Source of the DNA: Macrostomum lignano
Lineage: Eukaryota
Reading direction: 5' to 3'
DNA: 64,000 nt
Assembly (NCBI GenBank): GCA_002269645.1
Contig: NIVC01000260.1
Span: 558,001-622,000, forward strand
Shown: positions 4,709-61,295 of the stretch, in pieces
How positions within the stretch are numbered: the stretch's first letter is position 1
How the letters are laid out: each line of letters begins with the position of its first letter
Position numbers and translations under genes: made by a program
Notes under the pieces: model-generated
Database searches by the model: none
What the model was told of the DNA's origin: nothing
The model's input: the letters and a program-made list of their open reading frames with translations, nothing else

Positions 4709-5441
4709 TCAGTGCACGCGGAACTTGACCCAGTCGGCGCTCGTCTCGATCTCCTCGTCCACCTGAGCGTCGGTGAACAGCAGCAGGCGGCAGGCTCTCA
4801 GCTTGCTGTTGTACAGCACGTGTCTGCAGCTGGCCGCACGCATGCCAGCTGTCACGCAGTGCATTGCATTCTTCACCTGCAGCAGGTCAGCGTGGCAGTA
4901 CTCGGAGCTCGGGTTGTAGCTGGTGCGCTTGAACGGAGTGCAGCCACAGTTGGCCAGAGGCAGAGCGAGGCTGAGCTGCCCCAACGAACTCGCAGGCGAA
5001 GCCGCACAGTTCCGAGCAGACGTTGTCAGACAGCTTCCCGACCGCGTCATTGTACTGCCCGATGCAGTCCTGGTTGCCTCCGCTGTTGTTTGGATCGCCT
5101 GTTCGCCACAGGGAGTCATTCAGAGGCAGAATGCCCTTGCCTTTCACCAGCTGCCAGCCCGACCTGCTCGTGCCTCTCTCCTCAGCCAGGTCGGACACTC
5201 CGAGCCAGATGTTGCAGCTGCAGTTGAGACTCGGCATGCTGCCCAGCAACTGCAGCGAGCTGTGCGAGTTGAGCAGCTCGCCTCCGATCGATGCGCAGTG
5301 CCGATTCGCTGAGCACCAGGTGGAGCTCTGAGCTGTGCTCACGAACACGCATTTGCCGGCCTCGAGGCTGAACGGAGCGGGGCACGCGGTCAGCTGGGCC
5401 TGCACTGGCGTCAGCTGCCTGCTGTGCAGCAGGGTTAGCAT
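4709..5441 (-). pseudogene. C-type lectin + PAN/apple-like secreted protein, copy 1 (one frameshift)
   Basis: CPAPF...WCSANRHC...WLG...DPNN...DC...C...FACE lectin domain in ORF 4887-5558. The C-terminal domain (CRHVLYNSKLRACRLLLFTDAQV) is in another frame (4709-5119). At ~4940 TGG CTG C ACT lacks 2 nt relative to paralogs (TGG CAG CGG ACT). Confidence 0.85.
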
Positions 5442-6479
5442 AATTATAATGATTTTATTTTGCATACTGCCATTTTGCTTCTTTAACTTAGAAAAATATT
5501 TAAATTTTTGCGACCACGATATTTGGCACTGCAATTTTGTTTCGCGTTCGGGCTCCACCCAGTATAAGCACTATTTATTGAAAAACCCAGCCAAGGATAA
5601 GGTTCACTGAGTCGATTGATCCATACCTCAAGTCGTCGTCATCGCTTAAGAGTTTCCCCACGAATGCTATAATTTATTTCCATCAGTACTCCATTCAATA
5701 GAAGTTTTTCTACAGCCAAGCAGGAAGATCGGTATCAAGCGCGCTGAAGCGGAAATACGGAAAGTCGTCAGAATTTCCACAGGGTTTTTCCGTTACTACG
5801 GATGCAATGCAATACAATAGATGTAGGAATTACGACCGCGCTAATGCAGCAAATGGTTTACACTGTTTCTTCAGAATAGAAAGCACTGTAGTGTTTCAAA
5901 ATAGCAAATGCAAGCACTGAGGCGGTACACAGGTACACATAATTTTTTCCTGGTACGAATTCGCTGTGGCTAACTACAGTTAAACCCGATTGCTCTGATG
6001 AATTGCTGCAGCAGTAGCAGAGAATGCATGTCTAACCCGAGGAACCGGCCTTTATCATCTGTGCGTGGCTTCGTCTGCCACAAAACAATGTGAGACATTT
6101 GCATTGACACCAAATGCGTATAGAATATATTCTTCCTCATCTTAAAGCTTGTGAGACACGAGGGATTTTCTGCAAGAGCGACTGGGGTACCAGTGAGTTT
6201 ATTACTATATAAACTACATTTCCTGTATCTAAAATTCATAAAAATGCATGACACAACTCGAATCTTTGGTTTTTATGAATCTATCTTATCATCTCTGTTA
6301 CAAATATTTGTTACACAGTCAGCTAAGAATGATAAAATAGACTCATAAAACCAAAGAGCCGCGCTGTGCCATTTCAATGGTTTTTAGGCACAAGACACGT
6401 GCAAATGTACGTAGAATAAAAATTCACATAGAATCCTAATTTTCTTAACGAAAAGCTCCATGAATATCGATAGAGCAAT

Positions 6480-6580
6480 AAGAAAGGCACAACTTATCAA
6501 AAGATGAACACTGGATTTGCCTCCTATCAAAAGCAATAACAATTTTTGTGCTGAAAAAATGAAAACTTCCTATCTCCGTG
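6480..6580 (-). repeat. Dispersed repeat; inverted copy of ~896-988
   Basis: GGCACAAC..ATCAAAAGATGAACA..GCAATAACAATT..GTGCTGAAAA..GAAAACTTCCTATCTCC is the reverse complement of the segment inside the foldback spacer. Confidence 0.75.
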
Positions 6581-11453: not shown

Positions 11454-14400
11454 ATGGTTCTAAAAGCTATCCTGGAAGATACCTACAACTTGATGAAAGT
11501 AATTAAGCGAGGTCGCGAAGTAGTTTCTGGTGTAAGTTTCTATTCCTAGAGACTTTATGTTGATTTTTACCTGTTGTCTAGTGATCTGCTCACTGATACC
11601 TGTAGTGACAAATATTCTACCTATTATTCGTGCTGTGTGGTTGTGTGCCCCCTACATGTGTGGCGCACTTTAAGAGACATTGTCATACAACAGGCGAGAG
11701 GCATTACTGCCCATTTCTCTGACTCTGAGCGGGCACACATGCGCGCGGATACGTACGCAGGTCATACACACAGGCACACACTCGCACAGGATTGTACAGC
11801 GGCCCTATAACTTTATATTATCGTTAGGCATGTACACCTCACTGTGCCTTGGGGGTTGGCCCTCAAGGCCGTTAATTGCACGAGCAGAGCCAAGCCGAGA
11901 TTCCAATTTAGCCACAGATTAATGTAACTGCACTTGGAATCGAGCCTGGGCCGCTGGCACATCAGAGCGCGGCGCGACACCACTCAAACCACTGGGCTAC
12001 GGCCCCCTCCCCAACAGGGAGCCCCCTGTACGTGTGCATTGTCTATGCTGGTTTCCTTTGTTCCTCACTCCGCAGAGCATAGCCGAAAGAATTTGCGACT
12101 CGTACAAGCAGCTCAGTCTGGCTGAGAAGGAGACATTCTTCAACATGCTGGTGTCAGATCATGGCGTTGCGGAGACAACCAAAATCGGCATTACATTGGA
12201 CAGGGTAAGATGCTTATTTATTGGGTTTATAACGCCCCAACGCGTGTCATGTGTCATTTTTGGGTAGTGAGATGAGAGATTTTTGGGGAGTGAGATGAGA
12301 GATTTTAGGGGAGTGAGATGAGAGATTTTAGGGGAGTGAGATGTGGGACATTTTTGGGGAGTGAGATGGAATATTTTTGGGGATTGAGATGTGGGACATT
12401 TCTAAGGAGTGAGATGAGAGGTTTCGGGGGTGATATAGGAAATCTTTTAGGGAGTGAGATTAGAGATTTTTGGAGAGTGAGATGTGGGAGATTTTTGGGG
12501 AGTGAGAAGAGAGATTTTTTGGAGGGAGTGAGATGAGAGATTTGGGGGTGAGATGAGATTTTTTTGGGAGTGTGATGAGATATTTTTGGGTAGTGGGATG
12601 AGAGATTTGGGGGTGAGATAAGAGATTTTTGGGAGTGAGATCAGAGATTTTGGGGAGTGAGATGAGAGATTTCTGTGAAGCGGACAGAGTAAGGGTTATT
12701 TACTGAGTTTATAGCGTGTATGATGACGCATCGACTTAAATCTCAGCCAATTATACTCGTATTTTCATCTTGCCCGCAGTCAAATCCTGTGGAGAGCATT
12801 CAACGCCTGCAGAATCTGCGCCACATCACCCAGCCGCAGTTTGCCGGGCTGTTTCGCGTGCTCGGCAAAGCCCAAGGTGGAGTGAAGTTCATGGTTAATA
12901 TGCGCACTGATCTGAGCAAACTCACTGGCAAATCTACTGTAGAAGCTACTCCAGCTGTTGTCCCAGTGATCGACCACGAGCTCAAACAGCTGCTGTCTGT
13001 GTGGTTCAGCTCGGGTCTGTTTCACCTGCAACGGGCTACCTGGGAGTCGCCGAGTAGGCTGTTGGAGAAGGTGAATTTTTCTATGTTCTTCTAGAATTTT
13101 CTTCTATGCACTACATATCGGTAGGCTATTTTAGTAGGCATCGCAAAATGTACAGTAGGTTTTTTATAATTTAAACTTTGGCGCTAAAATTAATGTTGAA
13201 GATGGGAGATTTTTGGAGAGTGAGATGGGAGATTTTTGGAGAGTGAGATGGAAGATTTTTGAGGAGTGAGATAAGAGAGATTTTTGGCGAGTGAGATGGG
13301 AGATTTTCAGAAAATGAGATTTGAGATTTTTGGGAAGTGAGATGAGAGACATTGGGGAGTGAGATGTGAAAATAAATGATTTTTGAAGGATTCGCTTCAG
13401 ATTCCTTCCTTGCTACTTATTAGTAGATAATCACTTACTAAGCACGATTGAATTCCCTACCCTAACCTCGCTGTCAGGTGGCCGCTAGCGAGGCTGTCCA
13501 CCCGATCCTTGGCTGGCAGGATCTCAAACGTCGTGTTGGCGCCTACAAACGCTGCTTCGTGTTCACGCATCCCTGCCTGCCCGGCGAACCGCTGGTCATT
13601 CTTCACGCCGCACTGCTGGAGAATGTGGCCGACACCATGGAGAAAATTGTGCCAGCACTGTTTGAGCACATGCCTGATAGTGTGGAGGATCCCGCCAGGG
13701 TTAAGGTTTGCACTTTCTGGAAAGTGATTTTGAGGCAACAGATGGATGATTTTGAGGGAATAAGATGGATGATTTTGAGGGAACAAGATGGATGATTTTG
13801 AGGGAACAAGATGGATGATTTTGAGGCTACAAGATGGATGATTTTGAGGGAACAAGATGGATGATTTTGAGGGAACAAGATAGATGATTTTGAGGGAACA
13901 AGATGGATGATTTTGAGGGAACAAGATAGATGATTTTGAGGGAACAAGATGGATGATTTTGAGGCTACAAGATGGATGATTTTGAGGCAACAAGATGGAT
14001 GATTTTGAGGAAATGATGGATGATTTTGAGGGAACAAGATGGATGATTTTGAGGAAATGATGGATGATTTTGAGGGAACAAGATAGATGATTTTGAGGGA
14101 ACAAGATGGATGATTTTGAGGCTACAAGATGGATGATTTTGAGGGAACAAGATGGATGATTTTGAGGCAACAAGATGGATGATTTTGAGGCAACAATATG
14201 GATGATTTTGAGGGAATAAGATGGATGATTTTGAGGAAATGATGGATGATTTTGAGGGAATAAGATGGATGATTTTGAGGGAATAAGATGGATGATTTTG
14301 AGGGAATAAGATGGATGATTTTTAGGGAACAAGATGGATGATTTTTAGGGAACAAGATGGATGATTTTGAGGGAACAAGATGGATGATTTTGAGGGAACA

Positions 14401-17400
14401 AGATAGATAATTTTGAGGGAACAAGATGGATGATTTTGAGGCAACAAGATGGATGATTTTTAGGGAACAAGATGGATGATTTTGAGGGAACAAGATGGAT
14501 GATTTTTAGGGAACAAGATGGATGATTTTGAGGGAACAAGATGGATGATTTTGAGGTAACAAGATGGATGATTTTGAGGCAACAGATGGATGATTTTGAG
14601 GGAACAGATGGATGATTTTGAGGCAACAGATGGATGATTTTGAGGCAACAGATGGATGATTTTGAGGGAACAAGATGGATGATTTTGAGGCAACAAGATG
14701 GATGATTTTGAGGGAACAAGATGGATGATTTTGAGGGAACAAGATGGATGATTTTGAGGGAACAAGATGGATGATTTTGAGGGAACAAGATGGATGATTT
14801 TGAGGGAACAAGATAGATGATTTTGAGGGAACAAGATGGATGATTTTGAGGCAACAAGATGGATGATTTTGAGGTAACAAGATAGATGATTTTGAGGGAA
14901 CAAGATGGATGATTTTTAGGGAACAAGATGGGTGATTTTGAGGGAACAAGATGGATGATTTTGAGGGAACAAGATGGGTGATTTTGAGGGAACAAGATGG
15001 ATGATTTTGAGGGAACAAGATGGATGATTTTGAGGCAACAAGATGGATGATTTTTAGGGAACAAGATGGATGATTTTGAGGCAACAAGATGGATGATTTT
15101 GAGGCAACAAGATGGATGATTTTGAGGGAACAAGATGGATGATTTTGAGGCAACAGATGGATGATTTTGAGGCAACAGATGGATGATTTTGACGGAACAA
15201 GATGGATGATTTTGAGGGAACAAGATAGATGATTTTGAGGGAACAAGATAGATGATTTTGAGGGAACAAGATGGATGATTTTGAGGGAACAAGATAGATG
15301 ATTTTGAGGGAACAAGATGGATGATTTTGAGGGAACAAGATGGATGATTTTGAGGCAACAAGATGGATGATTTTGAGGCAACAAGATGGATGATTTTGAG
15401 GGAATAAGATGGATGATTTTGAGGGAACAAGATGGATGATTTTGAGGGAACAAGATGGGTGATTTTGAGGGAACAGATGGATGATTTTGAGGGAACAAGA
15501 TGGATGATTTTGAGGCAACAAGATGGATGATTTTGAGGCAACAAGATGGATGATTTTGAGGCAACAAGATGGATGATTTTGAGGGAATAAGATGGATGAT
15601 TTTGAGGGAACAAGATGGATGATTTTGAGGGAACAAGATGGATGATTTTGAGGGAACAAGATGGGTGATTTTGAGGGAACAAGATGGATGATTTTGAGGG
15701 AACAAGATGGGTGATTTTGAGGGAACAAGATGGATGATTTTGAGGGAACAAGATGGATGATTTTGAGGCAACAAGATGGATGATTTTTAGGGAACAAGAT
15801 GGATGATTTTGAGGCAACAAGATGGATGATTTTGAGGCAACAAGATGGATGATTTTGAGGGAACAAGATGGATGATTTTGAGGCAACAGATGGATGATTT
15901 TGAGGCAACAGATGGATGATTTTGACGGAACAAGATGGATGATTTTGAGGGAACAAGATAGATGATTTTGAGGGAACAAGATAGATGATTTTGAGGGAAC
16001 AAGATGGATGATTTTGAGGGAACAAGATAGATGATTTTGAGGGAACAAGATGGATGATTTTGAGGGAACAAGATGGATGATTTTGAGGCAACAAGATGGA
16101 TGATTTTGAGGCAACAAGATGGATGATTTTGAGGGAATAAGATGGATGATTTTGAGGGAACAAGATGGATGATTTTGAGGGAACAAGATGGGTGATTTTG
16201 AGGGAACAGATGGATGATTTTGAGGGAACAAGATGGATGATTTTGAGGCAACAAGATGGATGATTTTGAGGCAACAAGATGGATGATTTTGAGGCAACAA
16301 GATGGATGATTTTGAGGGAATAAGATGGATGATTTTGAGGGAACAAGATGGATGATTTTGAGGGAACAAGATGGATGATTTTGAGGGAACAAGATGGGTG
16401 ATTTTGAGGGAACAAGATGGATGATTTTGAAGGAACAAGATGGGTGATTTTGAAGGAACAAGATGGATGATTTTGAGGGAACAAGATGGATGATTTTGAG
16501 GGAACAAGATGGATGATTTTTAGGGAACAAGATGGATGATTTTGAGGGAACAAGATGGATGATTTTGAGGTAACAAGATGGGTGATTTTGAGGGAACAAG
16601 ATGGATGATTTTAAGGGAACAAGATGGATGATTTTGAGGGAACAAGATGGGTGATTTTGAGGGAACAAGATGAATGATTTTGAAGGAACAAGATGGGTGA
16701 TTTTGAAGGAACAAGATGGATGATTTTTAGGGAACAAGATGGATGATTTTGAGGGAACAAGATGGATGATTTTGAGGTAACAAGATGGATGATTTTGAGG
16801 CAACAGATGGATGATTTTGAGGCAACAGATGGATGATTTTGAGGGAACAAGATGGATGATTTTGAGGGAACAAGATGGATGATTTTAAGGGAACAAGATG
16901 GATGATTTTGAGGCAACAGATGGATGATTTTGAGGGAACAAGATGGATGATTTTGAGGGAACAAGATGGATGATTTTTAGGGAACAAGATGGATGATTTT
17001 GAGGCAACAGATGGATGATTTTGAGGGAACAAGATGGATGATTTTGAGGGAACAAGATGGATGATTTTTAGGGAACAAGATGGATGATTTTGAGGCAACA
17101 AGATGGATGATTTTGAGGTAACAAGATGGATGATTTTGAGGCAACAGATGGATGATTTTGAGGCAACAGATGGATGATTTTGAGGGAACAAGATGGATGA
17201 TTTTGAGGGAACAAGATGGATGATTTTAAGGGAACAAGATGGGTGATTTTGAGGGAACAAGATGGATGATTTTGAGGGAACAAGATGGGTGATTTTGAGG
17301 GAACAAGATGGATGATTTTGAGGGAACAAGATGGATGATTTTGAGGCAACAAGATGGATGATTTTTAGGGAACAAGATGGATGATTTTGAGGCAACAAGA

Positions 17401-20225
17401 TGGATGATTTTGAGGCAACAAGATGGATGATTTTGAGGGAACAAGATGGATGATTTTGAGGCAACAGATGGATGATTTTGAGGCAACAGATGGATGATTT
17501 TGACGGAACAAGATGGATGATTTTGAGGGAACAAGATAGATGATTTTGAGGGAACAAGATAGATGATTTTGAGGGAACAAGATGGATGATTTTGAGGGAA
17601 CAAGATAGATGATTTTGAGGGAACAAGATGGATGATTTTGAGGGAACAAGATGGATGATTTTGAGGCAACAAGATGGATGATTTTGAGGCAACAAGATGG
17701 ATGATTTTGAGGGAATAAGATGGATGATTTTGAGGGAACAAGATGGATGATTTTGAGGGAACAAGATGGGTGATTTTGAGGGAACAGATGGATGATTTTG
17801 AGGGAACAAGATGGATGATTTTGAGGCAACAAGATGGATGATTTTGAGGCAACAAGATGGATGATTTTGAGGCAACAAGATGGATGATTTTGAGGGAATA
17901 AGATGGATGATTTTGAGGGAACAAGATGGATGATTTTGAGGGAACAAGATGGATGATTTTGAGGGAACAAGATGGGTGATTTTGAGGGAACAAGATGGAT
18001 GATTTTGAAGGAACAAGATGGGTGATTTTGAAGGAACAAGATGGATGATTTTGAGGGAACAAGATGGATGATTTTGAGGGAACAAGATGGATGATTTTTA
18101 GGGAACAAGATGGATGATTTTGAGGGAACAAGATGGATGATTTTGAGGTAACAAGATGGGTGATTTTGAGGGAACAAGATGGATGATTTTGAGGGAACAA
18201 GATGGATGATTTTGAGGGAACAAGATGGGTGATTTTGAGGGAACAAGATGAATGATTTTGAAGGAACAAGATGGGTGATTTTGAAGGAACAAGATGGATG
18301 ATTTTTAGGGAACAAGATGGATGATTTTGAGGGAACAAGATGGATGATTTTGAGGTAACAAGATGGATGATTTTGAGGCAACAGATGGATGATTTTGAGG
18401 CAACAGATGGATGATTTTGAGGGAACAAGATGGATGATTTTGAGGGAACAAGATGGATGATTTTAAGGGAACAAGATGGATGATTTTGAGGCAACAGATG
18501 GATGATTTTGAGGGAACAAGATGGATGATTTTGAGGGAACAAGATGGATGATTTTTAGGGAACAAGATGGATGATTTTGAGGCAACAGATGGATGATTTT
18601 GAGGGAACAAGATGGATGATTTTGAGGGAACAAGATGGATGATTTTTAGGGAACAAGATGGATGATTTTGAGGCAACAAGATGGATGATTTTGAGGTAAC
18701 AAGATGGATGATTTTGAGGCAACAGATGGATGATTTTGAGGCAACAGATGGATGATTTTGAGGGAACAAGATGGATGATTTTGAGGGAACAAGATGGATG
18801 ATTTTAAGGGAACAAGATGGATGATTTTGAAGCAACAGATGGATGATTTTGAGGTAACAAGATGGATGATTTTGAGGCAACAGATGGATGATTTTGAGGC
18901 AACAGATGGATGATTTTGAGGGAACAAGATGGATGATTTTGAGGGAACAAGATGGATGATTTTAAGGGAACAAGATGGATGATTTTGAGGCAACAAGATG
19001 GATGATTTTGAGGGAACCAGATGGATGATTTTGAGGGAACCAGATGAATGATTTTGAGGGAACCAGATGGATGATTTTGAAGAAACAAGATGAATGATTT
19101 TGAGGGAACAGATCAGTGACAATACTCTGCCCATCCATGCCCTACTCTCGCAGGTGGCAAACTTCTACTCAATCAGCCGGCCCATTGACGGCTTGAGCGG
19201 CATCGACCTCGGCAGCAACATTGTCCGCCGGGTCATGCACCGTCTGCAGGCCGAGTACCCCAAGCTGCAGCACTTCTCCTCTCTGTCCCCCATCCCCGGC
19301 TTCAACAACTGGCTGTTTGGCCAGATCAATCGCCACCTGCAGCACGAGGTGTTCGCCAGAATTCTCGACGATGTTCGACCTGAGAGCTCCGACCTGCTGC
19401 CGTTGTTCTCTGACGAGACTCACGTCAAGATGATGCAGGTTGGCGGCTTTCCGTTCTCGTCATCTTTGGATTATCTACTTCTGCTCCCCCGGATAATCCA
19501 CGTCTATCTACCTGGATAATCCACGTCTATTCACATGGATAATTCACGTCTATCTACCTGGATAATCCACGTCTATTCACCTGGATAATCACGTCTATCT
19601 GCTTCGATTAGCCACATCTATTTATCTAGATAATCCACATGTATCTACCTGAATAATCCACGTCCATCCACCTAGATAATCCATGTCTATCTACCTGGAT
19701 AATCCGTCTATCTACCTAAGTAATCCACGTCCATCCACCTGGATAGTCCATGTCTATCTACCTGGATAATCCGTCTATCTACCTAGATAACCCATGTCTA
19801 CCCACCCCTGTAAACCTCAGCTATTCGACGTAGACAACAACAAAGACCTGTACACCAAGCTGTCAATGACGCTGGAGTCGCAAGAGTGGATCACCTCCCC
19901 AGTGCTAGTCTCGGAGCTGAAGCAGCCCCTGATGAAGCTGTGCGCTCGCTACCTATTCGCGCTGAAGCACCGGGGCCACGCATTGGATCCTATCGCTAAT
20001 TTTCACCTCCGCAACGGTGCGGTGATGTACCGCCTGTGCTGGCAGGCCGATCAGAGTCCGAACGGGCTGAGCCAGTCCTGCGGCATGATGGTCAACTATC
20101 GCTACTATCCAGAGCTCACTGAGGGCTTCTCTGAGAAATATTATTTTACTAAACGGATTCCGGTTGGCGAGCCGTTTGCTAGCGTTATCAGCATCGAACC
20201 GGACAGTCTGCCGCTTGACCCGTGA
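11454..20225 (+). CDS. MLYCD: Malonyl-CoA decarboxylase; exons 11454-11531, 12076-12204, 12780-13070, 13478-13705, 19154-19438, 19821-20225 (471 aa)
   Basis: Motifs match known MCD sequence: GGVKFMVNMRTDL, WFSSGLFHLQRATWESP, EAVHP..W.DLKRRVG.YKRCFVF.HP..PGEPLVILH.AL, FYSIS..L.GIDLG, FSSLSPIPGF, PIANFHLRNGA, SCGMMVNYRY. All introns are GT..AG and phase 0, giving a continuous frame. Exon 1 is the least certain. Confidence 0.93.
11820..12003 (-). mobile_element. tRNA-derived SINE in MLYCD intron 1 (partial copies at ~33770-33815 and ~48322-48357)
   Basis: The minus strand reads CCGTAGCCCAGTGGTTTGAG (A box) ... CCCAGGCTCGATTCC (B box), followed by a non-tRNA body; segments recur elsewhere in the window. 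Confidence 0.65.
12262..12672 (+). repeat. Intronic minisatellite GAGTGAGATGAGAGATTTT(A/T)GGG (~22-23 bp)
   Basis: Tandem units fill MLYCD intron 2; the same motif recurs at ~13197-13370 in intron 3. Confidence 0.9.
13726..19110 (+). repeat. 5.4-kb satellite of a 23-bp unit GAACAAGATGGATGATTTTGAGG (21-22 bp variants) with higher-order duplications
   Basis: Fills nearly all of MLYCD intron 4 (13706-19153). The marker variant GACGGAACAAG occurs at 15191, 15924 and 17502. Confidence 0.97.
19488..19800 (+). repeat. Intronic minisatellite CACGTCTATCTACCTGGATAATC (~23 bp)
   Basis: Tandem units fill MLYCD intron 5 (19439-19820). Confidence 0.9.
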
Positions 20226-20439
20226 GCTGCCGCTTGGCGTGCTTTTCTATGAATTTCTAAGAGTTACTAGTAACAACTTGTTTTTTTACTTTTGTTTCGT
20301 TTGCTTTTTGTTGCTGCGCCCGATTTAAATAACTGTCCGGAAATATTCCACATTTTGGAGAAATTTTCGAAAAATTTAGTATTGCTGTGCCTGCTTCCGG
20401 CCAGTTACCCCCCCCCCCACAGGCAAGTGAGTGAGCTGT

Positions 20440-20482
20440 GTCTATCTGTCTGTCTGTGTGTGTGTCTGTCTGTCTGTGTGTG

Positions 20483-20545
<63 letters not shown>

Positions 20546-20652: not shown

Positions 20653-20707
<55 letters not shown>

Positions 20708-20985: not shown

Positions 20986-21037
<52 letters not shown>

Positions 21038-21150: not shown

Positions 21151-21151
<1 letters not shown>

Positions 21152-45889: not shown

Positions 45890-47215
45890 AAGGCTCTCAC
45901 GAACGGACCGCGTTTTCTAAACTCTCTGTGGTGAAGAGACCTGATGGCTCGGTTCTTATCCGCGACCGAGAGAAGTTTCTTATCTGAATGTCATCTTTGA
46001 GGCCTTTGGCAGAGCACTGGATTCCAAAGCCACTCACCCTCACCTTGTGGATGATGTTCATGGCCCGGAACCGCACTGTCAAACTTCGCCTGTCCAGAAA
46101 AGGGGCCCTCAGGGCGGGGTTCATACCCCGGTCTCTGGAACATGGTCATGAGTTGCTTTGCAGCGACCTTTCGTGATCTCATTCTCAAGTTGGGCTAGCC
46201 GCCTGAGGGTCAAGAGTAACCTCGACGCTCTCTACAAAATCCAGGGCAGAGCCTGCCAAATGACTATGGGCGCTCCACCCTCTGCTCCTTTTGAGTGCAT
46301 GAATGCCTTCCTCTGTGCCCCTCCTCTGGATATTTATATCAAAGAAGAAGTGGGTGAAGAGCACCCGGCGCCTTCTGTATGTCGGGAAGGCGTTAAAAAA
46401 GGTGCGGGTCTTTAAGAAACGGTCCCTTATCCCGCACTCTGACCTCTGCCTTAAGACTCTCGAGGAGTGTGGCGGGCTCAACATTCTCATGGAGTCGATC
46501 CCAGCCGCCCTTCTCCTGAGCCAGCTCCTGTTCGGCAGAGCTGCGCCGAAGGCAGCTCAGCGCTCAGCGGAACATCAAAGATTTTTCACTCTGACAGCCA
46601 AGCAGCCCTTCGGGCCCTCTGCCGCAGCACCACCAACCCAAAATCTGTCCTGGACTACAATGCCCAGTTCAATGGGCTGGCGCTTGGCAATCAGATGGGG
46701 CTCAGATGGATCCCGGGTCACGCTGGTTTCCTCGGCAACGAGCGCGCTGACTTGCTGGCCAAGGCTGGCTCCGCCGGCGCGTTGCTGGGGCCGGGGCCCA
46801 GGGACCCCATCCCCGCCTCGGTGATCAACTCTCGCGTTAAGCGCTGGGATGTCTGCTGCCGGGATGTCCCTCCCCCCTCCTGCGCAGAGCCCTCCTTAGG
46901 CTTGACCGCAGGGACCTCAGAGCAGTTAGCATTTCCCTCTCAGGGCATGGCTGCTTCTCTCGCCACCGCTTCATTCAGGGCCAGGTACCTGAGGACTGGT
47001 GCCCTTTCTGCCGCTCAGGCAATGAAACTTTATCTGCTCACTCACCTCGGCCCGAAACCCTGGTTCTCCCCGACGTTTGCAGGCCCGAAAGCATCCCGTT
47101 GCTCGCCCGGTACCTCGGGGACACGGGACGAGCTGAGATCTTCCTCATCGCCGGTGAGGAGAACCGCGCTGCAGGCGAGGCCGTCGGGTTCCCCTGAGCG
47201 ACATCGCTTTGATTG
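45890..47215 (+). mobile_element. Decayed, internally deleted RNase H-bearing LINE related to 54152-60048
   Basis: IQGRACQMTMGA..S.PF..M.AFL..PPLD; DSQAAL...LRWIPGHAGFLGNERADLLAKAG (RNase H); large internal gaps. Confidence 0.82.
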
Positions 47216-48634
47216 AAGTCCTTGGTCGCCAGGGGCCAGCGGAATGGGGGTGTCAATCAGTGCCTATTAGCTCGTAGTGTTACGAATTGCTGTCTAAATC
47301 TATTAGTGTCAAGTGAACTGCGGGAAATCGTATCATTTGAATCAATGAGTAAAATAATCAGTACTTATGTGCGATATATCTCAAACCTTATGTGCGATCG
47401 TATTCAACACATTGTTTGTTTAATTATGCTTCATCCTCCTTTATTCTTGCATGATATCACCAGCGGCTGCAATTGGAGAAAGTCTAGTTTGCTATTTTTC
47501 TTTTTGCAAAGTATTTCAAACTCTCTCTTCAGCCTCCAATAACCACACTAAACTATCGCACCTGTTGATTGTTAGTTTTACACAAGCATTTCTCGTCTCA
47601 AGAAGCTAGCTGCTAGCGTTTCTCATCTGCAATGCTTAGCCTTGTTCAAATAAGGAGCAGCTGCAATCGAGGAGCAATAAGTATAGCTCGTATTGCTTAT
47701 ATCTGACTGTTCATGAGGGGAGCAAAATGTATTAGCCACTTTTTGAATAGGAAAAATGTCAGCCCAACTCTAACCATTAAGCTGTCTCACACAGGCATAG
47801 GTATTCGGGCTGTAGCAGTGCAAAGTGGGAGTTGAACTCCTCTTGGTAAGTATTGCTTGGCAAAATGCTGCTCGGCAGTGAATCGAAGGTATAAAAAACA
47901 GTCCGAGATGTAGCAGCTTCATTCAAAATACATTTGGCCCTTTTCTCTCGAATCACATCTTTCATGGTCAAATCATAGAAAGGACATTCCTGACTGAGGC
48001 ATCGCTGCGTTGTTTGAGCAGCCAAAGTAGAGCAGCAAAAACTGCTATGATTTTCTCTTCTTTTTTGGTATTTTAAAAGATTCAGATTGTTCTTCCTTTT
48101 CTCTGTGAGCTGCTAACATTTAGAGTGGAACATCAAAGCAAAGGCCAGTCCTGACAAGCACTACGAGCGTAGACCAGACCCAGACATGTTCGTCGGCTAT
48201 TCGCGGGTATTTACACTGGAAAGACAACTGCATTGCTTGGTGGATATTGAAGCAAGAGTCGGATAAATATTGAATCGCTGATGAACAGATGCTTGCTAAG
48301 CTTTGCAATTCTTCCAATTCGTGAATCGAGCCTGGGCCGCTGGCATATCAGAGCGTCCAGATGACTGAAACGGCCTTACAAAAAGCAATGAAAAATGCGT
48401 TTTACTCCAACGAAGATTCAGACCTTTAAAAACAGGCTTCGCCAACGGATACTGTCTCAGCTCTTAAGCACTCGTAAATGATTGACCTTAGCCTACAAAC
48501 AATAAATTAAGAAGATCAGGCACTGCTCCACTACTAACTCAGATATCAATTGTTTATCAATTTGCTTTTTAAAATTTCCTGTGTCCTTCATTGCTGAGAT
48601 CAGCCATCAGTACTCAGAAGTGACTCATGACTGC

Positions 48635-49341
48635 TCAGTGCAAGCCGAACTTGACCCAGTCGGCGCTCGTCTCGATATCCGCCTCCACCTGAGTGTCGGT
48701 GAACAGCAGCAGGCGGCAGGCTCTCAGCTTGCTGTTGTACAGCACGTGTCTGCAGCTGGCCGCACGCATGCCAGCTGTCACGCAGTGCATTGCGTTCTTC
48801 ACCTGCAGCAGGTCAGCGTGGCAGAACTCGGAGCTGGGGTTACGCTGCGCTTGAACGGAGTCCGCTGCCACAGTTGGCCTGACGGAGACCTCAGTGTTGC
48901 TTTATCGACAAACTCTCAGACTAACCCAGCCAGATTCAGAACTTGAAGAAGACAACACAGCAACGCAGTCCTGGTTGCCGTCTTGGTTATCAGGCTCAGC
49001 CGATGCCCACAGCGAATTGTCCAGCGGCAGGATGCCGTTGAAACTGGCCAGCTGCCAGTCCGACCTGCTCGTGTTTCGCTCATCGGCCAGGTCGGACACT
49101 CCGAGCCAGACCCAGCAGTCGCAGGCGAGTGTCGGCAGTAGCAGAGCCAGCTAGCTGTGCGAGTTGAGCAGCTCGCCACCGATCGATGCGCATCGCCGAT
49201 TCTCTGTGCTCAAGAACACGGCATTGGCCAAACTCGATGCTGAATGGGCTGGGGCAGGACTGGGTCCGCACCAACAGCAACTCGCAACTGCTCAAGCAGC
49301 CCAGAAGCAGCAATACCAGAGGGCACAAAGCTCTGATTCAT
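48635..49341 (-). pseudogene. C-type lectin + PAN-like copy 6 (several frameshifts and deletions)
   Basis: Fragments CPSPFSIEFGQC, SDLADERNTSRSDWQL..EPDNQDGNQDC and CHADLLQVKNAMHC...WVKFGLH lie in different frames. Confidence 0.85.
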
Positions 49342-50754: not shown

Positions 50755-52612
<1,858 letters not shown>

Positions 52613-52845: not shown

Positions 52846-54248
52846 GTATAACTCGCACAACCTAAGAAGACGGTAAAGCAAACTTAAATTACAAAGTTGG
52901 AAACAATTGAAATGGTTTTAATTTTTTTGAAAAATATGCTATATAACTTTGGAGTTGTTTTGGTCTCAGTTGGATCGGTGAAAACTGCTTAGAGACGACT
53001 GCAGAAGTGCTCGGAGATTAGGGGTCATCTGCTCAGGGATTACGCAAAAAAGTGCTGGTGAACCATTGCTAAACTGTAGAAACCAAGGGCTGTCAATGGC
53101 GAGCTTAAACAAAAAAACAGTAGACACTAGACATCCAGACCAGCCAGACTATTGGAAACTCGTCGACTGGGTATTTAAGTTTCAGTTTTTTCATACATAT
53201 AAAAATCAACAGAAAATGATCAACTCTTTAGGACTGCTAGACAGCTCACGGAGTACTGCAGAATCGCATTCTCTTCATGACAAATGCACTGAGAGCTTTA
53301 GCAACAACAGAAAGGTAAATAAAAAGGAAGAAAAGCGCTTTGAGCGTCTTTACTTGTTTTGCAAGCATCGATATTTGCGTAGGAATTTATTTGTTCGCTG
53401 GCTTCTGCTTACTCACCTGTAAGTGGCTTTTAAAAGGCTGATGTAACAAAACTTTTATGCCATAGCAACGCGGACTGGTCGCAAATCAGATACTCGTAAA
53501 TTCCCGACTGTCTACAATGGAAGAGTTTTTTGGTAACTGCGTGCTCTTTGTCTGTGCTCAACATTTAGCGACAATATAATGCAAGTGCTTCTGATTTTAA
53601 GTGCTCAACTGCTCTGGGCTTCAGCTCAGCCGTGCCCCGCTCCGTTCCACCTCGAGGCCGGCAAGTGCCTATTCGTGAGCACAGTTCAGAGCCGCACCTG
53701 GTGCTCAGCAAATGAGCAGTGCAAATCTATCGGAGGCGAGCTCGTCAACTCGCACGACTCCATCAAGCTGCTACTCGGTCGAAATATTTCCAGTGCCAAC
53801 TGCGGCTGCGACCTGTGGATCGGAGTGAGCGACCTGGCCGATGAGAGAGGCGGCAGCAGGGCCGGCTGGCAGAGGGTCAACGGCAACGGCCTGCTCCCGG
53901 ATGACAACTCCATGTACTTATCATACAATCCTACTGGCTCAACAGGAGAAAACTGCCTGCGCATCAGGAGGGATGTCACTCTTGGTGACAAAAGGTGCCA
54001 CTCTGTTCTCGGCTTCGTGTGCGAGTTTGTGAGTGAGACAGCCCGGCACCCTGCTACCGGAGTTTGGAAGGCCGCTGACTTCAAGCGAGAGCTGCACCAC
54101 TCTGTGTACTGCTTCAGCGATGTGCCGAATGTGAGCAGCGCCATGAGGTGCTTGACTTACTTGACTTAGCTGCAGGGCTGTCCCGGAGGGGACACAGCGG
54201 GAAGGCGCGGGCGCCCATTCCGCTAGTCCCTGAACGGCCGACGCGTCG

Positions 54249-57200
54249 CTATGGACGGAGGGTTGGCGCCGCCCAGGGAGGTCCCCCAGTGTCGCCAGCA
54301 GCTATGGTGCTCTCTGGAAAGGAGAGTTCAGCCCTGCGGGTGGCCCGAAGGTAGCGCATGAGCTGATTAAAGTTTTCGGGTTTGCACGCTTCAGTAATAG
54401 ATGTGTGTGGCCCGAGGTAAGTGAGTCTGGCCCGCGTGAAGGCGGGACAGATGCTGACGAAATGCTCAGCGGTTTCGTCACCTGAGTTGCAGAAACTACA
54501 GGTGGCGTTGGTGGCGTTGCCCTGCAGGTACTGGTGCCTGGAGAAGCAGCCGTGACCAGAGAGGGTCATGGTGGCAGCCCGGATGTCTCTGCGCGAGAGG
54601 CGCAAGAGGAGCTTCCGGAGCTGGTGAGAGGGCTGAGGGACAGCGCCTCTGGATTGCCTGCAGTTCGTGCGGTTCGCCCAAGTCGAGCGGTGCTGAGTCC
54701 TGATCCACGCTTTGATGCGCGAGTCGATGACACAGCCAGGAATCGGGACAAGAGGTTCGGGGCCGAGAGAGGAGCCGGAGGCACCAACTTTTGCAAGGGT
54801 GTCAGCGAACTCATTTCCTCGGATCCCCACATGCCCCGGAACCCACTTAAGGGTAATTTTGTTGGCGGAACCCAACACATTGAGGAGTTTGATACAGTCA
54901 AGGACTGTAGCAGAGTTGGTGCTGCAGCCACTGATGGCGTGCAAGGCAGCTTGGCTGTCCGAATGGAAAATGATGTTCTTACCAGTAACGCCAGTGGCGA
55001 GAAGCTCTGCAGTGCAGGAGCTGATGGCCAGAACTTCATTTTGAAAACACTGGAGTTGACCCCAGTGTATTGAGCGTGGGTAGCGATGACCCTCCCGTTC
55101 AGAAAGATTCCAACACCAAAGCCGGTGTTGGCTGACTGCTTAGAACCGTCGGTGTAGCAATGAAGCTCACCAGGGTTCCAATGGTCATTGATGTTATCGC
55201 GCGAGTCGATAGCTACGGAGTAGCGCTGTCTCAGGTTGAGCGTTGAGGCAATGCCATCGGTGAAGACGCGATTGGCCTGACACTCGTTGAGAAAGTTGAG
55301 GCACAGATCGCTATGCGGGACAAGGTTCCGCTTAGCAGGTGCTCTCATGTAAATGAATTTGACGCCGGCATCAATTAGACGCCGCGTCGTTCTAGCCGCC
55401 TCACCCCTGATGAAGAGGTCAAGAGGCGGAAGATTAAGAAAGGCCCCCATGCCAGCAAAGGGCGTGGACCTGGTGGCGTTGCAGATGAGCCTACACGCTC
55501 TGCCTTGGATCGTGTTGAGCAGGTCTGCATGGCTTTTGACCTGGGTAGCGCTAACCCAGACAACAGAGGCGTACGTAATGGCAGGTCTAACTACGGAAGT
55601 ATAGATCCACCAAAGCCGCTTTGGGGATAGACCCCAAGAAGTGCCAAGTGCTCGTCGGAGCTGGGCCAGGATGGCTGAGGCACGCTTAGCTTTTGCTTTC
55701 ACGTGGAAGGACCAGTTGAGCCGGTGGTCAAGTGTGACCCCGAGACATCTGGTCTGGTGCGCGAAGGCAATATCTCTGCCGTAGAGCTGCAGAGGACGTA
55801 TGTTCCAGCGTAGTCTGCTGGTAAACATAATGGCAACGGTTTTGGGCTCAGAGAGTTCCAAACCATTGTCATTGGCCCAGGATTCTGCTTTGCGGATAAA
55901 GCTCTGCATCAGATCCCTGAGCGTGCTGGGAGACGGTCCTGCCACAATGGCCGTGACGTCATCAGCATACCCGACTTTGAAGACGGGGTCAGGTCGGGAG
56001 TCACTCAGAAGAGCGTCCATGACCAGGTTCCAGAGCGTCGGGGTGAGGACTCCGCCTTGGGGTCCACCCTTACAGACTCTGGTGGAGGCAGTTTGCCCAA
56101 GAAGTTGGGCAGTGACCGTACGGTTGGAGATCATGTACATGATCCACCGTATGAGGGTAGCATGAGCTTTGCGATTTTGAAGGGCCCTCTGAAACGCTTC
56201 AAAGATAACGTTGTCGAAGGCGCCAACAATGTCAAGAAAGAGAGCCAGGGCGTAACCGTCACCCAGTACCGCCCGTTCAATCTTTTCGACAATCGCATGC
56301 AGGGCGCTGTCAGTCGACCTCCCGGTACGGAAGGCGTGCTGATTATTGCTGAGGGGCATCGCTGTCAGCTCGCAGGAGAGCAGCCGCCAGAGAATAAGCC
56401 TCTCAGTGAGCTTAAGCATTGCTGACGTTAAGCTAATTGGCCGGAAGGCCTTGACGCTTTGGTAGTCACCCTTCCCAGGTTTGGGAATAAAGACTACTCG
56501 AGCTTCAGTCCAGCTTTTGGGAACGTATCCCAGCTGGATAGAGGCCCGCATAAGATTGCGGGTGAGTCTCAGGAACGAGGGTATCTTGGCTGCTTCACGA
56601 AGGAGAACAGGGTAGATACCATCAGGTCCAGGAGATTTGAAGGGTTTGAAGGTTCTGACCGCACGAGCGATTAGGTCTTCAGTGACAATGCCCGCCGCTA
56701 GGGTGGCTCCATCCATCGAATGGTTGGGCTCCGGTCTAGCAGTAGGTACCCTCGGGAAGAATGTGCTAAGCATATGCTGAAGCACTTCTTCAGGGTCTTT
56801 AGTAAGAGAGCCATCATCTTTTTTGATCATGGCTAATTTGGACATTTTGTCCATTGTAAGGGCCTTGACAAGCCTAGAAGTAGGTCTGTCTTGATCCAAT
56901 TCATTGCAGAATTGGCGCCACTTACATTCCTTGGCCTTGCGCACTTCAGATTTGAAATTGCGGGAGGCTTGCCGGAAAAGCTCCATGTCCTCCGGGTTTC
57001 CGGTCTTCATGGCACGGCGATGAAGGCTTTTGGCCTTCCGCCTGAGTTTCCCCAGCTCCGGGTTCCACCACGGCGCCGAGGTCTTGCCTCTGTAGGCGCG
57101 AGCAGGACAAGCCGCTTCGTAGGCTGCAATAATGCAACCTGTCAGCGTCTCAGCCATATGATCCACATCCTCGCAGGTCTCAATCGGACGTAAGTCCGTG

Positions 57201-57988
57201 AGTTCCTGCAGGTGCAGATCAAGGGCAGCCTTGTAGGCCGCCCAATCAGTGTTGCGGATATTGCGTCTCCAAGTGATCGGAGACTGGGTTTTAGTGTCCG
57301 CGATATTAAAGGCAATAAAGCAGTGGTCAGACAGGGAGGGCTCCTCAGACCAGACTCTCCACTCCTTGACTCTGTCAAAGAGTCTTGGGGTAACGAGTGT
57401 GGCGTCGAGGACCTCGGTCCATCTGCCATTATTAAAGGTAGGAGTGCTGCCGCGGTTGCAGAGCATGAGGTTTGTGTTAGAGATGAGGGCCAGAAGCTCC
57501 TCTCCTCTAGTGTTGGTATCTTTGCTGCCCCAGTGCTTGTGGTGCGCGTTGAGGTCGCCCCCTAAGCACAGCTCAGCGTTCTGGGACTCGCAGTACTGCG
57601 CAAGGCGCAGTAAACTCTCGGGAGCAGGGTCTCTGTCGCCTGGGATATAAACCGAGGCAACAAGACACGTACGCGGAGAGAAATGATTAGATTGGATGAC
57701 GCAAAGGTCTCCATCAGAGAGATCAGTCCTCAGCCAAGCCTGGAGATGGCTAGCAGCGAGGATAGCCGCTCTAGGGCGGCTGTTCCCCGGGCCACACACA
57801 TAAAAATCAGAGTAGCCAGAGGGAATGTTGGGCAACTTACCGTTGCGCATCCAGGGTTCCTGGATCAGGATGAGGCCTGGCCTGTACAGCTCAGCAATCT
57901 TCATCAGATTTACTGACGCAGATACGCAATGCTGTAAATTTATTTGCAGACAGAATGTCGCTCCTTTGGCAGCGTGGAGCTTAGTCAT
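54249..57988 (-). CDS. LINE ORF2: APE endonuclease, RT, RNase H and CCHC finger (one -1 frameshift at ~55045)
   Basis: QINLQH, LIQEPW, GGDLNAHH, LSDH; FLDIVGAFD, PQGGVLTP, YADD; YTDGSK, DSQAAL, KWVPGHVGIRGNEFAD; CSFC..ETAEHF..C. Adding one C (TTC CAA AAT GAA) restores FQNEVLAI. Confidence 0.92.
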
Positions 57989-58011
57989 ACTGTATTAAAT
58001 GCAATATCTGG

Positions 58012-59588
58012 CTAGAGCCCAGGGTCATCAAGGAGACTTGGACAACAGATCGTCCTCGTCCCAGGCCGCTGGGGCTTGACTGGGAGATGGGAGTTGGTCG
58101 ACGTCCATGGCCTCCTCACCCCCACCGGCCCCCCAGCAGACTCCTCAGGCTCCGATGACAGGATGGAGGAAGCTTCCTCACCTGCATCTTTACCTTCAGA
58201 CCCCACCAAGGTGGCCGAGGAGAGCTCGGATTCCGAAGACCCGGCCTCGTCCTCAACTCCTTCTCCGACTGGCAGGTTTGGTTCCCGGGGCTCGGCCGGA
58301 GCCGTTACCGCGGTCGCCGAACTGCTGCTAGCAGAGGGGCGAGATGCAGCTTTGGCTTTGGGATCGGCTTGCGCCTTTCCTTGGGCCTTAGACTGCGCCC
58401 CGCTCTTGCCGGAGATGCCGGGGTTGGCAGTAGCCTTCCCTTTGGCAGACTTTCCTCGGCGCAACTTGAGCTTGAGGGCACCCAGCTGGAAAGAGGATCC
58501 ATTAGGGTACCGACTCGCCCAAGTGCTGGAAAGGCCGAGGACAATTGAGTTGCCCGTCTCCCCCCTGCGGACTTTACGGTGATACACCAGTCCACTAGCA
58601 GGGAGGTCGGGGTTCAGACGCAGTAGGACCCGGCGAATAACGTCTGGTCCAGCTGCGGTGCTCTTAGCAGGGACGAAAACCACATAGGGTATCGTCTTTG
58701 GACGCTGGCCCTCGCGAAGAAAAAGAGCTCCACCAAGGTCAGCATCCAAGGAGACCGTCGGTAGCCGCTGGAGCAGCCGCCGAGCGTCCTCCTCGCTGCT
58801 AGGAGCAATAAGAACGAATGTGCTTCGCAGCACCATCCGCTCAACGCCGATGGAGATTCCCTCCTCGACAGTCAGCTCAACAGATAGGAGTCAACAGCAC
58901 TCCACACTTTTTGAAGCTGATCAGTGGTCCAGTCCTGGTCGCGACCTTGGATGATCACTCCCGGGATTTTGGCCTTGGCCTTCGCCGCAAAGGTAGCTCC
59001 CGAAGGAACCTCCTTGTTGGCAGTGGCCATTTGTTGCGCCGTGGTTTCGGCCTCAGCAGCCGCGGCAGCAGCTCCAGGGAGCGCCGCCGCTGAACTACTG
59101 GAGCTTCCACCGGCCGGCCCGCCTGGTTGCCTTGGGACTCCAGTCGCTTCAGCATCCATGGTGGACGCCGCCGCTTTGGCCCCCGCAGCTCCCTTCTTGG
59201 CCTGCCTTTTGGCGCGTTGTTTAGCGCGTTTGCGCTCAAGCCGAGCCCGCTGAGCTTCATCGGATCTGCCAGATTTGGCCGGTCCTTTAGGCTCAGAGCT
59301 CGCGGTTCCCTTAGATCCACCAGCGGAGCTGGCAGGTCTTAGGGTGTTTTGAGTTTGGTAGCTCTGGTCGGATCTGCCAGCAGAGCCAGCCGGTCCTTCC
59401 TTTGCCACAGTTGAATCAGTCGGTTGGGATCTGCCAGCAGGGCCGGCCGGTCCTTCGGACTGAGGTTGGGGTTTAGAAGGGTCCCCATCCCTAGAAATAG
59501 CTTGTTTATCCATAGTCGGCTCGAAGGCCATGATAGAAGGTTGGTGGGCTACCCTCAAAGGGGCGCGGTACCCACCCGGCCGCTCCAC
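58012..59588 (-). CDS. LINE ORF1 (one frameshift at ~58875)
   Basis: A basic, low-complexity N-terminus (ERKRAKQRAKRQ). ORFs 58872-59588 and 58012-58836 join if one G is added (TTG GAG CTG); the ORF ends 24 nt before ORF2. Confidence 0.7.
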
Positions 59589-60562
59589 CTGACCGGGCAG
59601 TAGGCCAATAGCACCCTCAAGGCTGGCCCGACACCAGGAGGGGGACCGCTTGCGACCGGACTACTCCCCGGCCTTCCAGCCCATCGGCACGGTCAACACC
59701 TTAGGCATTAGAGAGTACGTTGAGCAGTACCACGGCCTGCAGGTTGGCGAGCCAGACCCGCATACCCAAATTCGGCCGAAGCCACTGGATAGGGTCGCCA
59801 GCGCCGGAGCCCAGTCTGTCCAGCAGCCCTAGGGACTGCCTTGAACACACGCGGGGACGAGTACCCTGGGTCGACTTGCGAGACAGCGTGGGGGGGGGGT
59901 CTGCGGCTGCCAGAGGCAAATAGAGGGTGCAGACCTCCCACCAGCCTTGACCTGCTGAAGATAGGGGCAGGCGTGAAGCATCGCAGACCTTAGCCCATGG
60001 GCCTAGTCTGTCTCATACTTCACTGGCATGCTGAATACGCCTTCGCGTGCGCCATGAGGTGCACTGCAGCCGGCATGCGTGCGGCCAGCTGCAGACACAT
60101 GCTGTACAACAGCAAGCTGAGAGCCTGCCGCCATGAAGCATATGAAGCACATGAGGCATAAGAGGGCTTAGCTCTATTAATATCAGGTGTCATCCATGTC
60201 TTGCTGGTATTTGAAATCAAGTTCCTAGGCCTCATGTTACTTTTTTAGTGCACGATCCCTTGTTAGACATCGGGTATGTTTCCCGTGACAACTACTACTA
60301 TAGACAGCGACTGTCACCTTCAGAAATTCCAGTCGTCACGTACTGACGTACTGACGAACTCACGTACTGTATGCGAACCAAGGCAATGACTGAATGGTTC
60401 CTGGTCAATAACAGTTGGTTTGAAACTATTGATATTAATTGCTCCGAATTTTGGAAACGTGGCAATTAACCTAAACCGCTTCACTTGAAAACTACGTTCA
60501 TGTAGACCAGCTAAGTGCCTACTTTATAACCGTAATACTAGGTAATTTATTGTTAGAATCAA

Positions 60563-61295
60563 ATGAAGTCTCTGCTGCTCCTCTGCATCCTGAGTTGTCA
60601 GCTGCTCTGGGCGTCAGCTCAGCCGTGCCCCGCTCCGTTCCGCCTTGAGGCCGGCAAATGCGTGTTCGTGAGCACAGTTCGAAACTATAGCTGGTGCTCA
60701 GCGAATCGGCAGTGCGCATCGATCGGAGGCGAGCTGCTCAACTCGCACAGCTCATTGAAGCTGCTAAGCAGCATGCCGAGTGTCAACTGCGGCTATTTGC
60801 TTTGGCTCGGCCTGACAGACCTGGCCGAGGAGAGAGGCAGGAGCAGGAGGGGCTGGCAGAGTCAACAGCAACGGAATCCTGCCACTGGACAATGCCCTGT
60901 GGGCTTCGGACGACCCTAACAACGAAGGCGGCAATCAGAACTGCATTACTCTGTCAGCTTCAGGCTTTCGAATGTTTTATCTGCACTGCTCAGGCCTGGC
61001 TGGATTTACCTGCGAGTTTGTCGGCGGACTGATATCGCAACCTCTGTCAAGCAGCTCATGGCGGTGGACTCCGTTCAAGCGCACCAGCTACAACCCCAGC
61101 TCCAAGTTCTGCCACGCTGACCTGCTGCAGGTGAAGAACGCCATGCACTGCGTGGCAGCCGGCATGCGTGCGGCCAGCTGCAGACACGTGCTGTACAACA
61201 GCAAGTTGAGAGCCTGCCGCCTGCTGTTGTTCACCGACGCTCAGGTGGAGGAGATGATCGAGACGAGAGCCGACTGGGTCAAGTTCAGCGTGTAG
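60563..61295 (+). pseudogene. C-type lectin + PAN-like copy 8 (one 2-bp deletion at ~60860)
   Basis: CAG A GTC AAC versus CAG AGG GTC AAC in paralogs; correcting it gives one frame through DDPNNEGGNQNC...GFTCEF...WVKFSV. Confidence 0.85.

Follow-up and report, generated by a model that had tools for sequence, protein, structure and literature searches.

What kind of gene family do eight related sequences in a 64-kb stretch of the genome of the flatworm Macrostomum lignano represent, and how have its members come to be nearly identical at one end and widely different in the middle? The stretch, positions 558,001 to 622,000 of contig NIVC01000260.1 (GenBank assembly GCA_002269645.1), is called the window here, and all coordinates refer to its 64,000 nucleotides. 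The sequences lie between 4709 and 61295 and share an architecture of about 238 amino acids: an N-terminus that resembles a signal peptide, followed by a long-form C-type lectin-like domain (CTLD) and by a C-terminal domain with four cysteines. The interpretation that we favor, and that we regard as moderately probable, is that they form a tandem family restricted to Macrostomum, with intronless coding sequences for small secreted proteins that combine a CTLD and a PAN/apple-like domain (CTLD-PAN proteins), and that this family has grown by duplication and been patched by gene conversion.

An initial annotation of this DNA had described eight copies of one architecture, and a tblastn search of the window with copy 5 (c5) as the query bears this out, as c5 matched eight loci and no others (E = 3e-164 to 2e-27). 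The condition of each copy was read from three-frame translation, DNA alignment, and codon reconstruction, and the earlier count of three intact, two frameshifted, and three destroyed copies proved correct. The intact open reading frames (ORFs), all on the minus strand, are c2 (28986-29705; tblastn match 28989-29651) and c4 (34211-34930; match 34214-34876), each encoding 239 amino acids from the signal-peptide ATG, and c5 (39817-40533; match 39820-40533), which encodes 238 and serves as our reference copy. In all three the frame is open to the stop codon from a Leu-rich, signal-like N-terminus (MLALLLLLLLSCQLLQSQA followed by L); the longer ORFs of c2 (294 amino acids) and c4 (262 amino acids) begin ahead of the ATG that actually opens the signal peptide. 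Given the Leu-rich N-terminus with SQA after it and no other hydrophobic segment, the copies are predicted to be secreted. In c2, c4, c5, c7, and c8, a polypyrimidine tract followed by AG is located 6-21 nt upstream of the ATG (e.g., at 29706-29730, 34931-34955, and 40534-40555). This arrangement looks like a splice or trans-splice acceptor, and splicing there would eliminate the upstream ATGs that lie in frame in c2 and c4. Approximately 150-200 nt downstream of the stop codons of c2, c4, and c5 there is a AATAAACAATGGCAT(T/C)CCAAAAA motif, which probably marks the poly(A) signal region.

The remaining five copies are damaged to very different degrees. Two of them carry a single 2-bp deletion each and are otherwise fully open, namely c1 (4709-5441, minus strand; match 4715-5450), in which the deletion falls in the inter-domain linker at ~4940-4943, and c8 (60563-61295, plus strand; match 60611-61292), in which it falls within the CTLD at ~60860. 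Three others are wrecked. In c3 (31237-31979, minus strand; match 31240-31979) there are several frame changes and stops, a tandem amplification of a 40-bp unit (5.1 copies, 99% identity, 31552-31753), and a partial deletion of the PAN domain. In c6 (48635-49330, minus strand; match 48641-49264) the ATG is missing, 1 bp has been inserted and 24 nt have been deleted, and two stops interrupt the frame, while the PAN-coding 3' end is conserved and still in frame. Finally, c7, on the plus strand, matches at 53576-54157 with a further fragment at 60024-60131, and is split at about codon 191 by a long interspersed nuclear element (LINE) of ~5.9 kb. Its first 191 codons (53579-54151) are open as far as the insertion point, and the gene resumes past the LINE at 60051-60131 (AMRCTAAGMRAASCRHMLYNSKLRACR) before being truncated beyond 60131 with the loss of its last ~31 codons. 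The LINE itself (54152-60050, minus strand) has ORF1-like ORFs, an ORF2 of 1140 amino acids for endonuclease and reverse transcriptase, and, in a different frame, a domain for RNase H; a target-site duplication of 12-14 bp, gccatgaggtgc, borders it at 54140-54151 and 60051-60062. Thus, of the kinds of damage named in the initial annotation, the internal amplification (c3) and the LINE insertion (c7) stand, but c6 has suffered more than a nonsense codon and c7 is also truncated at its 3' end.

Several lines of evidence place the N-terminal domain of these proteins in the CTLD superfamily. First, every readable CTLD, that is, those of c1, c2, c4, c5, and c7, matches the Lectin_C profile (PF00059) with 26.1-34.1 bits against a gathering cut-off of 22.6. 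Second, a model that AlphaFold computed from 12 family sequences (predicted local distance difference test score, pLDDT, 78) reaches a pLDDT of ~90 across most of the CTLD core, with lower values in the long-loop region, and superposes on the CTLDs of DC-SIGN and CD23 with TM-scores (TMt) of 0.75-0.82. Matches to Mincle, LOX-1, and tunicate TC14 were also obtained, and the set as a whole has E-values of ~1e-6, TMt of 0.7-0.82, and root-mean-square deviations of 2.3-3.6 Å. Third, the alignment contains the C1-C4 and C2-C3 cysteines, the C0-C0' hairpin of the long form, and the WIGL motif (CPAPF..G.C, WC..N..C, LW(I/L)G(L/V), ..NC.., and C....GF.CE), and c2, c4, and c5 retain all framework cysteines together with WIGL. 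By profile, fold, and cysteines, the copies belong to the CTLD superfamily. They also have an extra pair of cysteines directly before WIGL, one of which is missing from c8, where a Cys-to-Tyr replacement has occurred at a conserved position just ahead of the motif. The canonical motifs for Ca2+ site 2 and sugar binding (EPN or QPD plus WND) are kept in no window copy: at the aligned positions c4 and c5 have EPS with LRD, c1 has DPN with LSD, c8 has DPN with FYL, c7 has NPT with LGD, and c2 has no equivalent. The domain is therefore best described as C-type lectin-like, and canonical Ca2+-dependent sugar binding is not to be assumed.

The C-terminal domain is more divergent, and its assignment draws on four independent lines, each of them weak. 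The PAN_1 profile (PF00024) matches the C-terminal ~80 residues of the window copies with 10.3-18.9 bits, which is under the Pfam cut-off of 21.4. A profile search of the PDB with this domain recovered Toxoplasma MIC4 apple domains (E = 1.8e-3), Sarcocystis SML-2, and fungal PAN domains. Among remote relatives of the family, P0011, which is linked by the domain profile (E = 2.6e-4), clears the PAN_1 threshold with 34.8 bits, and P0005 and P0008 (21.2-21.3 bits) lie at it. Furthermore, a model of the domain alone (pLDDT 76.6) was searched with Foldseek, and nearly all of the 50 matches listed are PAN/apple-type folds, the best being the HGF N domain, plasminogen PAp, a fungal oxidase PAN domain, SML-2, leech antiplatelet protein (LAPP), and an Eimeria PAN module (probability 0.97-1.0; query TM-score, TMq, 0.5-0.67; E = 1e-2 to 6e-1). 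The relatives P0009, P0005, P0008, and P0011 keep all four core PAN cysteines in the canonical C-x3-C-x5-C arrangement. In the window copies, three of the four are present, the second is Ala or Gly, and there is an additional Cys upstream; one canonical disulfide would then be missing, and another cysteine (in YCF) may pair instead. Taken together, these lines suggest, with moderate confidence, a PAN/apple module of divergent sequence at the C-terminus. The combination of C-type lectin and PAN-like domains in the initial annotation is thus upheld for the former by scores above cut-off, and for the latter by these four lines with PAN_1 itself below its cut-off.

Where else does this architecture occur? 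The protein closest to c5 is P0001 of M. lignano, a UniProt "C-type lectin domain-containing protein" with 82% identity, and related domains are found in the further M. lignano gene models P0003, P0006/P0007, and P0008; the closest protein to c1 is the C-terminal part of P0003. A HMMER search with the C-terminal domain against 1.84 billion representative proteins gave 11 matches, all of which are M. lignano entries or derive from short metagenome contigs. The relatives outside M. lignano are encoded solely on such contigs (P0002, P0005, P0009, and P0011), and one of them, P0009, is a complete intronless ORF of 244 amino acids with the same CTLD-PAN architecture. No one-to-one orthologues in distant species, which the initial annotation had named as something that would overturn its reading, appear among these matches, and the family is apparently restricted to the Macrostomum lineage. 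A metagenome protein with PAN and CTLD domains in the reverse order (P0015; 31% identity over the CTLD) was rejected as a member, and neither a peptide-pattern scan nor an exact 3'-motif scan of metagenome DNA gave further relatives. The divergent CTLD-PAN units in M. lignano lie inside models annotated as guanylate cyclase (P0008), globin (P0006/P0007), and sodium/solute symporter (P0003), and these chimeric models are almost certainly mis-merged neighboring or intronic genes. The clade of P0008, P0009, and P0005 is without the C2-C3 cysteines of the CTLD. The initial annotation did not recognize a described family here, and our literature search agrees with it: no paper was found that combines C-type lectin, PAN, and flatworm, or that describes a CTLD-PAN architecture. 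The M. lignano protein Mlig-tuf2 is different, as it consists of IgV and CLECT domains (PMC12732829).

Are these genes still functional? For the pairs whose divergence is well estimated (c5/c4 and c1/c8), the ratio of nonsynonymous to synonymous substitutions per site (dN/dS) is 0.2-0.6, which implies function over most of the family's past. The c1/c8 comparison alone gives 0.2-0.5, and so the single frameshifts of these two copies are either very recent deaths or errors in the assembly. If they arose in assembly or polishing, the window would contain five functional genes against three pseudogenes, with correspondingly less "death" in the family. The c1-like protein P0003 of M. lignano reads through the same place, and each of the two copies has only the one 2-bp deletion in an otherwise fully open frame, as would be expected for such errors. 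On the other hand, both deletions lie outside long homopolymers, and c8 has in addition lost a conserved cysteine. We consider assembly error unlikely, while giving it appreciable weight. No claim of positive selection on the loops is made, as dN/dS there is 0.3-0.9 with dS saturated.

A bleaker reading of the same copies is that the family has lost its function and is decaying, and that its three surviving ORFs persist by chance or only because conversion repairs them. Damage to five of the eight copies and the missing canonical lectin motifs would fit this, as would the exact-protein look-ups, which gave no expression record (no record at all was returned for c4, c5, c7, P0001, or a 664-amino-acid ORF from the window that is described below). 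A relic would not be expected to retain three open frames of ~238 codons, a dN/dS below 1 in every well-estimated comparison, and the complete set of framework cysteines and WIGL in c2, c4, and c5; moreover, there are intact relatives in M. lignano and on metagenome contigs, including the full-length intronless ORF of P0009. We consider decay without function very improbable.

The most distinctive property of the cluster is the uneven divergence along its genes. We estimated dN and dS by the Nei-Gojobori method for separate segments, each with 14-57 synonymous sites. The last ~120 nt, which encode SCRHVLYNSKLRACRLLLFTDAQVE.EIET.ADWVKF in the C-terminal half of the PAN domain, are 91-99% identical across the copies, including the pseudogenes c3 and c6 and the stub of c7 (the segment lies at 4712-4831 in c1, 28989-29108 in c2, 39820-39939 in c5, and 61176-61292 in c8). 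Over the last 40 codons dS is 0-0.13 for all pairs. Between subfamilies it rises to 0.3-0.7 in the 5' CTLD framework, and in the CTLD long-loop region and linker it exceeds 1 or is incalculable through saturation; when c2 is compared with c4 and c5, saturation extends over the whole central region (loops, linker, and N-terminal half of PAN). At third codon positions, identity between subfamilies is accordingly 0.91-1.00 in the tail versus 0.27-0.50 in the center (Fisher's exact test, p = 1e-12 to 1e-16). As the central region is synonymously saturated between subfamilies, the duplications are not all young, and the fast turnover asserted in the initial annotation is not shown.

The relationships among copies also change from segment to segment and from coding sequence to flank. 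The flanks of c2 and c4 are homologous over 620 bp on the 5' side and 180 bp on the 3' side, and c3 and c5 are homologous in their 3' flanks, which indicates duplication of a two-gene block, represented by [c3,c2] and [c5,c4]. The coding sequences conflict with this: c4 is 91% identical to its neighbor c5, with homology that stops ~11 bp beyond the coding sequence, and the 3' coding sequence of c3 is 97% identical to that of its neighbor c2. Some tracts are specific to single pairs, as c7 and c5 diverge by 2% in the N-terminal half of PAN versus 22% and 55% in other segments, and c2 differs from c5 by 8% in the 5' framework versus 54% in the center. A homologue of c1 on the metagenome contig L001 has c1 as its nearest relative in all segments but the last, in which it is 13-16% from every window copy while the window copies are 1-9% from one another. 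GC content at third codon positions is 0.90-0.93 in the homogenized segment, and 0.90-0.95 over all homogenized parts, versus 0.44-0.74 in the loops, as GC-biased conversion predicts. In short, paralogues within this genome are closer to each other than to the single outside sequence, in discrete tracts, and with flanks and coding sequences in disagreement. This is the pattern of mosaics produced by segmental gene conversion, in which concerted evolution would affect the 3' end and the coding sequences of neighbors. The birth and death proposed previously is borne out by the duplications and lesions, though not in its pure form, since the copies are conversion mosaics. Retroposition was considered as a source of the intronless copies, in which homology ends with the coding sequence. 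The flanks of c2/c4 and c3/c5 are homologous, and a putative M. lignano spliced-leader sequence has no match in the window; retroposition was rejected, and tandem or block duplication with conversion is preferred.

Could the constancy of the 3' segment instead reflect a function at the nucleotide level, such as an element for mRNA localization or stability, a target of small RNAs, or an antisense product? Synonymous sites in this segment are conserved in every copy, pseudogenes included, its antisense frame is open in several copies, and it is here that dS to the outside homologue is lowest (0.28 versus 0.5-0.8), all of which a nucleotide-level function would explain. Yet the outside homologue is 13-16% different in just this segment, with 10-12 nonsynonymous changes, one of which removes a Cys, and RNA structure was rejected for the constant segment, in which its signal is absent (z = +0.96). 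Moreover, a fixed element would not account for tracts shared only by particular pairs (c7 with c5, c3 with c2, and the coding sequences of c4 with c5), and the incongruence of flanks and coding sequences needs conversion in any case. We regard nucleotide-level function as improbable. The conflict between flank and coding sequence, the pair-specific tracts, and the tail of the outside homologue all favor gene conversion over constraint.

Based on these patterns we propose the following course of events. The cluster would have grown by tandem duplication, including that of the two-gene block, and would have lost copies through small indels, minisatellite expansion, and LINE insertion. Short conversion tracts may patch it continually and hold the last ~120 nt near-identical everywhere; conversion could also homogenize neighboring coding sequences while the CTLD long-loop region and the linker remain maximally different. 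In this manner conversion, perhaps with counter-selection in the loops, would maintain constant ends and a variable middle. The proteins themselves would be soluble extracellular binders, in which the variable CTLD loops may set a separate ligand for each paralogue, be it a glycan or a protein, and the constant half of PAN may provide a shared contact, for example for oligomerization or for docking to a common partner. Candidate settings in which they may act are defense, mucus or adhesion, the gut, and reproduction. Several points weigh against this reading. With respect to the domains, PAN_1 scores stay below the cut-off, one core PAN cysteine is replaced, the Foldseek E-values for PAN are only ~1e-2, and binding of carbohydrate in the usual mode is unlikely to judge from the missing motifs. 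With respect to the evolution, the segmental dS values are drawn from few synonymous sites and reach saturation in the variable part, the outgroup comparison has one metagenome contig as its sole outside sequence, and the 2-bp deletions of c1 and c8 could be assembly errors.

A stronger version of conversion would make it a generator of diversity for secreted recognition proteins. The 5' framework, being constant, and the near-identical last 120 nt would then serve as homology anchors for the copying of hypervariable CTLD-loop cassettes among working genes and the pseudogenes, all of which retain the anchors, in the germ line or even somatically. In its logic such a system would resemble the pseudogene-templated conversion of chicken immunoglobulin genes and the mosaic Sp185/333 and FREP families. 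We consider it a long shot for this cluster.

Comparison with known systems helps to separate what is common in this family from what is not. Soluble single-CTLD proteins such as tunicate TC14, Reg/lithostathine, and the C-type lectin-like proteins of snake venom likewise have a signal peptide and a single CTLD of the long form that contains WIGL, the N-terminal cysteine hairpin, and the C1-C4 and C2-C3 pairs, whereas the window copies add the C-terminal PAN-like domain and the extra Cys pair before WIGL, and do not conserve EPN/QPD and WND. The PAN/apple modules of HGF (N domain), plasminogen (PAp), MIC4, SML-2 (a galactose-binding apple domain), and leech antiplatelet protein share the predicted strand-strand-helix-strand-strand-(short helix)-strand topology, and the window motif C..(A/G)......C(R)..YN....C.L aligns with the PAN core; unlike these modules, the window PAN domain is single, C-terminal, placed after a CTLD, and below the profile cut-off, with Ala or Gly in place of its second core Cys. 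Among invertebrates, lineage-specific CTLD families that have expanded in tandem and include pseudogenes are common, and the clec genes of Caenorhabditis elegans are likewise clustered in this way. Mlig-ap1, an adhesive protein of M. lignano, is also secreted and has C-type lectin domains, but it is a very large multi-domain protein, unlike the ~238-amino-acid products of the window (PMC6410801), and nothing ties the latter to adhesive organs.

The resemblance to snail FREPs that was raised in the initial annotation is partial. FREPs and CREPs are recognition proteins of Biomphalaria that combine immunoglobulin superfamily (IgSF) domains with fibrinogen or with C-type lectin domains, respectively. 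They too are secreted, lineage-specific, multi-copy two-domain proteins of lectin type with variable and constant parts, encoded by intact and defective genes. In contrast, the window coding sequences are intronless, and no copy matched an IgSF or fibrinogen domain in Pfam. The family is thus neither FREP nor CREP. By analogy, its closest counterparts in evolutionary mode would be multigene families that mix birth and death with conversion. The major histocompatibility complex (MHC) class I and II genes and the V segments of immunoglobulins similarly have mosaic tracts, homogenized constant parts beside divergent binding parts, and pseudogenes with conserved tracts, although the proteins are unrelated and, in the window, saturation of dS prevents a demonstration that the variable part is under positive selection.

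The surroundings of the cluster are rich in repeats, and the cluster is not contiguous, since a malonyl-CoA decarboxylase gene (MLYCD) with at least four exons (12720-20225, plus strand) separates c1 from c2. One MLYCD intron contains a 5.4-kb satellite (13725-19110; 236 copies of a 23-bp unit, 94% match), which yields long spurious minus-strand ORFs; a search with an MLYCD exon matched only remote sequences, at 46-58%. The left edge of the cluster is marked by an exon of a rhodopsin-family G protein-coupled receptor at 1952-2668 on the plus strand (7tm_1, 61 bits). Arrays of (TGTC)n/(TCTG)n microsatellites occupy 20439-21151 (0.7 kb) and 50757-52612 (1.9 kb, between c6 and c7), a 2.1-kb array of a 32/60-bp unit (26072-28184) is located directly downstream of c2, and a 151-bp unit forms a six-copy array at 22991-23926 and recurs beside c5 in both orientations at 40689-41851. 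The repeats that bracket the c2-c5 block may have mediated rearrangements. An intact ORF of 664 amino acids (42289-44283, minus strand) is Cys-rich with zinc-finger-like N-terminal motifs and has no Pfam match; inverted repeats of ~500 bp that are 93% identical (40689-41198 and 41341-41851) lie on one side of it, and it could be a domesticated gene or else a transposase of no recognized class. Downstream of c6 there is the 3' fragment of a second LINE (46303-47216, plus strand) with an RNase H domain (25.8 bits). The Ly6 gene that had been placed next to the cluster was not found in the window by a scan for Cys-rich single-exon ORFs or for CCx(3-7)CN, scans that a multi-exon gene could escape.

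The basic finding is ordinary, and its novelty lies in how CTLD and PAN are combined and in how sharply the constant 3' tract is bounded. As it stands, the cluster is one more case in which a very common domain family has expanded. Nevertheless, it provides a clean, small-scale case in which birth and death and segmental gene conversion act on one family, and its constant 3' segment means that a single RNA interference or in-situ probe could target every copy. Free-living flatworms are models for regeneration, adhesion, and sexual conflict, and to our knowledge their secreted recognition repertoires are almost uncharted. If the variable loops are ligand-specific and selected, flatworms would have in this family an equivalent of the diversified lectin repertoires known from snails, nematodes, and echinoderms.

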